Shown: one piece after another, positions 36,345 to 38,719 of the stretch
Layout: every line of letters starts with the position of its first letter
Numbering within the stretch: position 1 is the first letter of the stretch
Assembly (NCBI GenBank): GCA_002189035.1
Contig: NEEC01000011.1
Coordinates: 1,426,001-1,490,000, forward strand
Direction: 5' to 3'
From: Utricularia gibba
Lineage: Eukaryota > Plantae > Magnoliophyta
Length of the DNA stretch: 64,000 bases
Notes under the pieces: model-generated
The model's database searches: none
What the model was told of the DNA's origin: nothing
Seen by the model: the letters and a program-made list of their open reading frames with translations, nothing else
Translations under genes and position numbers: made by a program

Positions 36345-38719
36345 ATGGACAATTTCAAAGGTTAGACTCCTTAGTCCGTGTGTTTTTTGCAAGAATTGCC
36401 CATTGCATGTGCTCACTAATCCCTGTTTCGATGGATGTGTTTGCTGAATTTGGGTGTTTAGCTTTATTTCTCGAGTCATTCGCGGTCTCTTGCAGAGATA
36501 AATGAGATTTTTGTGGCTACCCAGAAAATAGTTTTAAGTTGCACATGATGTGCATCTCTGTGAGACGTTTTAACTATGTTATCCATTTGAATCCATCCTG
36601 GCTTCTTCTTGGTTTCTGTTATGTGACATGACAGGGAGAGAGATCGTATCAATAGAAATTTTCTATTTCTGTGCCTTTCTGCTTGTGCTTTTGGTCTTCT
36701 TGAATCCTGCGGCTTCTCTCACTGGCGTTTGTGTGTTTTTCAGTTGTTGAATCAAAAGATGGGGCTATCCCGGGTGCTGCTGTGTTTACAGCTCAACAAG
36801 AAGGTGATCAAGAGATTTTCTTACTACAATCAGCGATTTTGATCCATGAAGTGCATGATTGTGTTTTTCTGATACGTTGTGTTCCAATCATTTTTTAAAA
36901 AAATTAAGTTTCTTAGTGTACGCACTTGCGTCATTTTTTTAGTGAATGCCCTCCTGCTGTTGTTTCAGCACTTTCTTTTAAATTTGTGCTGTTAGCTGAT
37001 TTATATATGTTTATCAGTTGTTCAAACTGAAGATGGAGTTATCCCGGTTCCTGCTGCGTTAGCTGCTCATCAAGAGGGTAACCACTTTCTGGAATGCCGG
37101 TTGGCATCTGATGATTAGGAGATTTTCACCTTTGGGAATTCATTGTTTAATTGGTTTACATCACAAAAACAAACTAAGATCGTAGTCTTCGCAGTAGTGC
37201 TAATAATATTCTATATTCACCCTATTTTCAAAGGTTTCAAAAATGGAGTCATATAATATTCATAAAGCTTTGCTTAAGAGCTGTGGAGTTCCTTTTAGAT
37301 CCATTAGCAGTTTTAGGATAATTTGATTCTTTCTTTTTGTGTAATAAAGGATGGTTAATGTAGAACTCTACTCTTCCGAAGTTGTTTAATACCCTTACAC
37401 TCCATTTTCACCATTTCTTTTGATTATCAAGCATCATCTTTCTGTAACGTCGTGCTGCAACTTTTTGCACAGTTGTTGAAGCAAAGGATGGAACTATCTC
37501 AGTCTCTTCTGCATTTGCTGGCCATCAAGAAGGTAATTTTTCGGTTCTGCTGTCAATCCTTGTTGGTCCTTGTGAGTGTATATGTCACAGCCTGTGTACG
37601 TTGAATTCATATAAGCTTACTAGATTAGAGCCATGGGTAACAAAGAAATGCATTCATTTAGTTTCTTTGTAAAGAAACATAAAAGACCTTCGATTGATTG
37701 AAATGAAAAGCAAGATGCTTTTTCTGTGCTTTCCCACAGCCAAAGAGATCATCATTGGTTTGAGCTTTGTCCATAATCTCGATCATGATATTTTTCAATT
37801 TGGAAAGCGAATATGTATTCTCATGCTTCTCTTTATGCTACTTTCTGTGATCCACTTCCGTCTCCTCTGTATCATGTGAAAGCTAAAATTAGATTGCGAC
37901 TGTGCATCTTTACTGTTGAATGATTCTTGAGCATCTCATTCTCTGGTTTTGCAGAAAAGTCTTGATTTTGGTCGGCATTATATGATTATTTTCAACACGT
38001 GTTAATAATCCGGCATGTGATTCATGCGATGAACAGAAAATTTTACATTCTTGCTTTGCAGCTGTTCAGGATAGAGACCACAAATTCTTGACTAAAGCAG
38101 TGGAAGAGGCCTACCGTGGGGTAGAATGTGGGGACGGAGGTCCTTTTGGCGCTGTTGTTGTTCGTGATGATGAAATTGTTGTGAGCTGCCATAACATGGT
38201 TCTCAAACATACAGATCCCACTGCTCATGCTGAGGTTACAGCAGTAAGGGAGGTTAGATTCATTTCCAACCGAAACAGAACTCTTCTAAGTTCACCATGA
38301 TCTTCAACTCCATACCAAATCTTAACACATTTTCTTTGGTTTCAGGCTTGCAAAAAGCTTAACAAGATTGAACTCTCTGACTGCGATATCTACGCCTCCT
38401 GCGAGCCCTGCCCGATGTGCTTTGGTGCTATCCATCTTTCTAGAATCAAGGTGTCTCTCTAACTTGCTTCCAGACTTGCCATTTCTCTACACTAACCAGC
38501 CATCTCTGCCTTTGGTATTTATTCCCTCAGAGACTGGTGTATGGCGCCAAGGCTGAAGCCGCGATCGCAATTGGGTTCGACGACTTCATTGCTGATGCAC
38601 TGAGAGGTACGGGCTTTTACCAGAAAGCAAACCTGGAGATCAAGCAAGCCGATGGAAAAGGAGCCATTATTGCAGAAGAGGTGTTCGAGAACACAAAGGC
38701 AAAGTTCACACTGTACTGA
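36345..38719 (+). CDS. GSDA: Guanosine deaminase; exons 36345-36360, [36744-36803, 37018-37077, 37473-37532 = three paralogous exon-2 copies], 38062-38252, 38346-38450, 38531-38719
   Basis: [19 protein letters not shown], the Zn motifs DPTAHAE and [36 protein letters not shown] and C-terminal FTLY. All splice sites are GT-AG. Confidence 0.95.

Follow-up and report, generated by a model that had tools for sequence, protein, structure and literature searches.

Serial inclusion of a tandemly triplicated exon 2 in a predicted guanosine deaminase gene of Utricularia gibba

A gene of Utricularia gibba that has the features of a plant guanosine deaminase (GSDA) carries three homologous exons of 60 nucleotides (nt) in the place where most angiosperm GSDA genes have a single exon 2. 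The question raised by this locus is whether the three exons enter the mRNA together, one at a time or in variable combinations, and whether the additional copies are of any use to the enzyme. The gene occupies positions 36345–38719 on the forward strand of the window analyzed here, a stretch of 64,000 nt (contig NEEC01000011.1 of assembly GCA_002189035.1, positions 1,426,001–1,490,000); all coordinates refer to this window unless another locus is named. In assembled RNA the three exons are found one after the other, and we consider it likely, with good confidence, that exon 2 was duplicated twice in tandem, that all copies are placed in series in the mRNA, that the ensuing elongation of the protein tail is tolerated and that the upstream copies are drifting. 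The triplication is real and fairly ordinary, two- and three-copy versions being already annotated in related Lamiales.

The gene consists of seven exons and every intron is of the GT..AG type. The coding part of exon 1 (36345–36360) starts with the ATG, encodes MDNFK plus one base and ends in phase 1 at a GT donor; the 5′ untranslated region (UTR) extends to at least 36308. It is followed by exons 2a (36744–36803), 2b (37018–37077) and 2c (37473–37532), each of 60 nt and phase 1-1, bordered by AG and GT, of which 2a and 2b are divergent extra copies, 2b being the one nearest 2a, and 2c is the canonical copy. Coordinates, peptides and splice sites of the three are all as described by an earlier reading of this DNA made from its letters (the sequence-only reading). 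Exon 3 (38062–38252) contains the start of the catalytic domain, of cytidine-deaminase (CDA) fold, and holds the HAE zinc/catalytic motif, exon 4 (38346–38450) carries the zinc-binding motif CEPCPMC, and the coding part of exon 5 (38531–38719) ends with KAKFTLY followed by TGA. The 3′ UTR reaches at least 38862, the end of a contig from the RNA run X1 discussed below. Joined in the order 1, 2a, 2b, 2c, 3, 4, 5 the exons form an open frame of 226 amino acids (aa), or of 186 aa with 2c as the sole exon 2.

The assignment to GSDA, already made in the sequence-only reading, is borne out by the homology of exon 3 and by the motifs. The translation of exon 3 (63 aa) matches the crystal chains of the Arabidopsis enzyme (AtGSDA) with E=5e-31, Bacillus guanine deaminase with E=1e-13 and TadA with E=7e-9, and is 83–92% identical to plant representatives named guanosine deaminase, the name that is also carried by the best protein matches. 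Homologues carry the PFAM domains PF00383 and PF14437, and both motifs of the CDA fold, H-A-E (in PTAHAEVTA) and P-C-x-x-C, are present in the translation. The C-terminal Tyr is present as well, as the counterpart of AtGSDA Tyr185, the residue that closes the active site (PMC9739398). Indeed, AtGSDA (185 aa; PDB 7dbf and others) and the window protein have in common the catalytic domain, HAE, CEPCPMC and the C-terminal Tyr. On these homologies, 36345–38719 is assigned as a typical plant GSDA gene with a predicted enzyme activity. The 226-aa protein itself was not among the relatives retrieved for the three-copy protein of Salvia described below.

The three copies of exon 2 align with each other without any indel, 2a and 2b being identical at 46 of 60 nt and each of them being identical to 2c at 43 of 60 nt, with 10–11 of 20 residues shared at the protein level. 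A comparison of each exon with every position of the 64-kb window, on either strand, gave a chance background that averaged 15.3 identities out of 60 (standard deviation 3.4) and never exceeded 33; the copies lie approximately 8–9 standard deviations above it, and the three exons alone produced matches above 33. A tblastn scan of 36000–39000 yielded no copy beyond these three, decayed ones included. The surrounding introns present another picture: local alignments of the flanks (150 nt per side) scored no better than shuffled sequences (p 0.09–0.84), whereas those of the exon copies scored far above the shuffles. Because the intron flanks can no longer be aligned, the duplications are old, in agreement with what had been supposed from the sequence. 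The canonical motif was defined as the consensus from 50 angiosperm GSDAs; 2c has 19 of 20 residues of the commonest angiosperm form and 2a and 2b have 11 of 20 each, so the third copy alone is canonical, as proposed before. Exon 2c is the ortholog of the one exon 2 that other angiosperms possess. The Arabidopsis peptide with which the sequence-only reading had compared it is approximately right: Capsella and Camelina have one copy, whose peptide is one V shorter.

The use of the exons was analyzed with Logan RNA contigs from four public runs (X1, X2, X5 and X10, belonging to three studies and bearing two organism labels) placed on 36100–38900. One contig of X1 (1169 nt) and one of X10 (664 nt) each run through 2a, 2b, 2c, exon 3 and exon 4, the X1 contig continuing into exon 5, and in X2 and X5 the matching joints are spread over overlapping contigs. 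The joints 36803>37018, 37077>37473, 37532>38062, 38252>38346 and 38450>38531 occur in all four runs, all of them with GT..AG introns. The joint 36360>36744 between exon 1 and exon 2a, equally GT..AG, was recovered in X5 only, together with 51 nt of exon 1 (the contig is cut at 36358/36742, an offset of +2). In all runs the depth is zero in the intron bins 36852–36945 and 37604–37697 and in the upstream region 36100–36287, and therefore the contigs derive from spliced RNA and not from DNA. The six joints by which 2a, 2b or 2c could be skipped are 36360>37018, 36360>37473, 36360>38062, 36803>37473, 36803>38062 and 37077>38062; not one of them was assembled in the contigs of the four runs. The sequence-only reading had allowed for the possibility that the exons at 36744 and 37018 are never spliced into mRNA; both are spliced in every run. 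The locus represents a tandem exon duplication with joint inclusion: its homologous exons agree in length and phase and occur in one and the same mRNA. The assembled mRNA encodes the 226-aa protein, and this, rather than the 186-aa "canonical" model, is what the annotation should give. Run X5 also contains a low-depth intron-retention contig covering the intron between 2b and 2c (37048–37425), with 15 mismatches to the window over 378 positions; X5 therefore carries a diverged haplotype, a cultivar or a close relative in which the three-exon splice series is unchanged. As a separate observation, the X1 contig has A for C at 36741, three bases before the acceptor of 2a (tcag > taag), the AG being retained.

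Analysis of the related genes places the triplication in a wider context. Exons were verified at the DNA level in Andrographis, Rehmannia, Orobanche, Olea, Perilla and Acer, whereas Salvia splendens, Sesamum and Erythranthe nasuta were compared at the protein level. One copy is found in the Oleaceae Olea (a single exon at L004) and Fraxinus and in most angiosperms. The single-copy genes, as in Olea, share the exon 1/2/3 phase structure of the window gene; Arabidopsis and most angiosperm GSDAs thus differ from it in having one exon 2 instead of three. Two copies are present in the annotated 206-aa proteins of Sesamum indicum (XP_011078743.1), Andrographis paniculata, Erythranthe nasuta and Castilleja foliolosa; at the DNA level they correspond in Andrographis to 60-nt AG/GT exons at L001, 4330–4389 and 4959–5018, and Orobanche likewise has two AG/GT exons at L003. 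These two-copy genes of the core Lamiales have one copy of exon 2 fewer than the window gene but are built in the same manner, with a tandem 60-nt exon of phase 1-1, a divergent copy upstream and a canonical one downstream, and in Sesamum and Andrographis the upstream copy carries the same "DG.IP" signature as 2a and 2b. Rehmannia glutinosa has two intact copies and a third one bearing a stop (L002:3654–3713). This third copy is the 5′-most, contains an in-frame TAA (VSSM*DGSISVTSALIAHQE), has kept a GT donor and is not part of the annotated protein; an internal AG would yield a 45-nt in-frame exon.

Three copies are found in Lamiaceae, namely in the 224-aa proteins of Salvia splendens (XP_042062850.1) and S. 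hispanica (XP_047950559.1), both annotated as guanosine deaminase isoform X1, and in the 223-aa protein of Perilla frutescens (KAH6772491.1). The S. splendens protein aligns end to end with the window protein (residues 1–226 vs. 1–224) with 80.6% identity. As in the window, the Lamiaceae proteins contain three tandem N-terminal repeats of which the canonical one is the last, and in Perilla each repeat corresponds to its own AG/GT exon (51, 60 and 60 nt; L005, 3675–3725, 4096–4155 and 4937–4996). The lengths are not the same: the first Lamiaceae copy has 17 aa (the 51-nt exon) and the second Salvia copy 21 aa, whereas the window copies all have 20 aa. Outside the Lamiales, Acer negundo possesses an independent recent duplicate (L006, 4515–4574 and 9501–9560), its copies lying 5 kb apart, each preceded by the same 15 nt and followed by the same 10 nt. 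The N-terminus of a Ginkgo protein (P0275, 223 aa) appears to repeat the peptide of exons 1 and 2 (MEEAN... then MEEANFVESKDGTISV...), which could be a separate duplication or an artefact of the gene model.

When the 60-nt copies were placed in a maximum-likelihood tree, 2a and 2b grouped together beside the 5′-most copies of Perilla and Rehmannia (ultrafast bootstrap 85); the tree is weakly resolved, and with sequences of 60 nt it would not support a one-to-one orthology of individual copies. The simplest history suggested by these sequences is a first duplication after the split of the Oleaceae, with further gains, shortening and decay in particular lineages afterwards. Our literature search found no paper on GSDA exon duplication, in line with the earlier statement that this arrangement had not been described. 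That statement does not extend to GenBank, which contains two-copy proteins from five genera of Lamiales plus Rehmannia and three-copy proteins from Salvia and Perilla; within the clade, multiplication of the exon is therefore largely a common feature that existing annotation already contains.

Selection on the individual copies was estimated as dN/dS by the method of Nei and Gojobori on 20 codons per copy, so that all values have a wide error: copy 2c compared with the 3′-most copies of other species gives 0.03–0.13, 2a compared with 2b gives 0.81, and 2a or 2b compared with the extra copies of other species give 0.35–0.61. Between species the 3′-most copies share on average 18.1 of 20 residues and the extra copies 11.8 of 20. 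These comparisons suggest that the ancestral constraint rests on copy 2c and that the upstream copies are relaxed, though not clearly neutral. The open reading frame of the extra exons needs no special explanation once they are always included, since a stop in them would inactivate the enzyme. The proposal that the duplicates are kept under selection is retained for the frame and the splice sites and must be qualified at the level of residues, where 2a and 2b look relaxed (dN/dS 0.35–0.81).

Concerning the position of the repeats in the protein, the AtGSDA crystal chains comprise 161 aa, their alignment starting at the DHKFL motif and ending at the C-terminal Tyr; it follows that they do not include the peptide encoded by exons 1 and 2. 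An AlphaFold2 model was calculated for the three-copy Salvia protein (P0234), taken as a proxy, as a monomer and from a 50-sequence alignment. The predicted local distance difference test (pLDDT) is below 50 at residues 1–63, as well as at 171–194 and in the last three residues, and a confident core extends from the helix 67–86 to the strand 163–168. The low pLDDT of residues 1–63, together with the absence of the corresponding peptide from the crystal chains, suggests that the repeats lengthen a flexible N-terminal tail, which would place them in a predicted disordered region outside the deaminase fold. In the 50-sequence alignment the canonical 20-mer is nearly invariant across angiosperms. 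The term "N-terminal" does not occur in either of the two GSDA structural papers that were searched for it.

Taken together, these data are best accounted for by gene elongation. In the 226-aa enzyme encoded by the assembled mRNA, a leader of 5 residues is followed by three repeats of 20 residues each and then by the catalytic domain; a flexible tail presumably tolerates the addition of 20 or 40 residues as long as the frame is kept. The duplications would have arisen by an old unequal crossover or by segmental duplication of the exon with flanking intron, the first of them after the split of the Oleaceae, and the later gains and decay would have taken place in separate Lamiales lineages. The extra exons would persist mainly because an always-included exon that acquires a stop or a frameshift destroys an essential purine-catabolic enzyme, and the extra peptides would need no function of their own.

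Several points weigh against this explanation or limit it. Besides the wide error of the dN/dS estimates, the values of the extra copies (0.35–0.6) remain below 1, and nearly every copy retains V1, V2, D6, G7, I9, Q19 and E20. The extra copies may accordingly be under some constraint at the residue level, although the conserved positions are partly splice-site sequence, the shared GTTGTT... and ...CAAGAAG/GT overlapping the splice-site consensus. The evidence for inclusion comes from the contigs of four runs only, and Logan contigs are consensus assemblies in which rare variants are lost, so that low-level or tissue-specific skipping may escape. The tail disorder was predicted on the monomer of the Salvia proxy, which is neither the window protein nor the dimer. 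Moreover, the main contigs of X1, X2 and X10 do not begin in exon 1 but run from 36383, 36376 and 36495, respectively, through intron 1 into 2a. These contigs may reflect intron retention, an artefact of the assembler or a second start site near 36376. We infer that they represent a retained intron or pre-mRNA from which the assembler has clipped the very short exon 1; in X5 the splice between exon 1 and 2a is seen at high depth, with intron 1 at about 1% of that depth. An alternative coding start within intron 1 was considered and rejected, as a stop codon lies in frame at 36701, no ATG downstream of it is in frame and the upstream open reading frames are all short.

Other explanations give a different meaning to the same exons. 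In the sequence-only reading they were regarded as a cassette, and one may suppose that their combinations are regulated by tissue or nitrogen supply, resulting in isoforms of 186, 206 and 226 aa whose tails and properties differ. Every combination does keep the frame, as had been noted and as simple arithmetic confirms, and several isoforms are listed by NCBI for the GSDA genes of Sesamum and Salvia. Shorter proteins are also annotated in other plants: that of Erythranthe guttata (P0442, 166 aa) joins exon 1 to exon 3, that of Penstemon (P0443, 164 aa) likewise lacks the exon 2 peptide, and further entries of 164–166 aa are found for Populus euphratica (isoform X4), Durio (isoform X2), Ilex, Nymphaea and Ananas. 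By analogy, exon 2 can probably be skipped in some plants and minor isoforms of the window gene are possible. However, the expected range of 186–226 aa did not appear in the contigs, the 226-aa form being the only one assembled: all four runs show the series 2a-2b-2c-3 and none shows a skipping joint. The extra copies, moreover, look relaxed and not specialized, and the one shorter isoform of Salvia divinorum that was inspected (X3, 185 aa) starts inside the upstream intron and is not a product of exon skipping. Regulated use of the exons is for these reasons considered unlikely. The opposite supposition, that 2a and 2b are unused pseudo-exons or that the copies are mutually exclusive with one per mRNA, was understandable before RNA was available, when by sequence 2c alone looked canonical; it is refuted by the single contigs of X1 and X10 that hold 2a, 2b and 2c consecutively and by the joints found in four runs, and is left with practically no probability.

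There is also the view that the extra copies are functional, the 20-mer being a docking or regulatory motif whose multiplication, as multivalency or as a longer tether, was favored in core Lamiales. In its support, the canonical 20-mer belongs to the best-conserved parts of the protein (as judged from the low dN/dS of 2c and the nearly invariant alignment columns) in spite of its location outside the crystallized domain, and from this conservation it probably has some role. Duplications of this exon, furthermore, have arisen or lasted more than once, first in the core Lamiales, then anew in individual lineages of that order, and also in Acer, and the seven residues named above are retained in nearly all copies. 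On the other hand, about half of the motif residues that are otherwise nearly invariant have been lost from the extra copies, and what they share is in part splice-site consensus. The stop in a Rehmannia copy and the loss of three codons from the first copy of Perilla and Salvia imply that exon copies are dispensable, and recurrence would be expected under neutrality too for a symmetric exon encoding a disordered tail. We therefore hold a function of the extra copies to be quite improbable. A related proposal combines the two ideas, with the 20-mer acting as a regulatory or docking linear motif, its multiplication being adaptive through valency or tether length, perhaps with condition-dependent skipping of a kind that contigs cannot show; we give it little credence. 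Elongation of the tail by tolerated exon duplication is hence the explanation that we retain.

Tandem exon duplication with mandatory inclusion is a well-known route of gene elongation leading to internal protein repeats. An example in animals is the helix-loop-helix (HLH) exon of the vertebrate COE transcription factors (PMC2394523). The COE exons resemble those of the window in being adjacent, homologous, of equal length and phase and all spliced into mRNA; they differ in that the COE repeat belongs to a folded domain, whereas the window repeat lies in the predicted disordered tail of a metabolic enzyme. Arrays of mutually exclusive exons, such as those of Dscam, stem from tandem exon duplication as well (PMC1397879, PMC6071210). 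They have the tandem duplication of a symmetric exon in common with the window gene, but their copies are used singly and not together.

The chromosomal surroundings of the gene were also compared. A CYP94B3-like P450 gene (502 aa, intronless) lies at 39071–40579 on the forward strand, about 350 bp past the GSDA stop codon. By name it belongs to the jasmonoyl-isoleucine 12-hydroxylase family, and its top matches are all from Lamiales with 64–70% identity (Sesamum alatum 70%, Perilla 69%, Paulownia and Handroanthus 68%). An exact look-up of this P450 protein gave no record, and by its matches the window belongs to a core-Lamiales plant for which the protein collection holds no close annotated relative. 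Downstream of GSDA, Rehmannia and Perilla have a His_Phos_1 gene, Andrographis has an exportin-5 gene and the window has this CYP94B3-like gene; local synteny around GSDA is not conserved.

In summary, the locus is an RNA-supported case of a gene that has been elongated through tandem duplication of one symmetric exon, of which one copy is constrained and the others drift. Its relevance is chiefly one of annotation, the length of the product being at stake, and the exon triplication leaves the knowledge of purine catabolism unchanged. It does draw attention to the conserved peptide of exons 1 and 2, which is missing from the AtGSDA crystal chains and for which we found no paper discussing it. 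The natural variants with one, two and three copies, together with the 166-aa proteins without exon 2, constitute a ready series for probing the role of this peptide.

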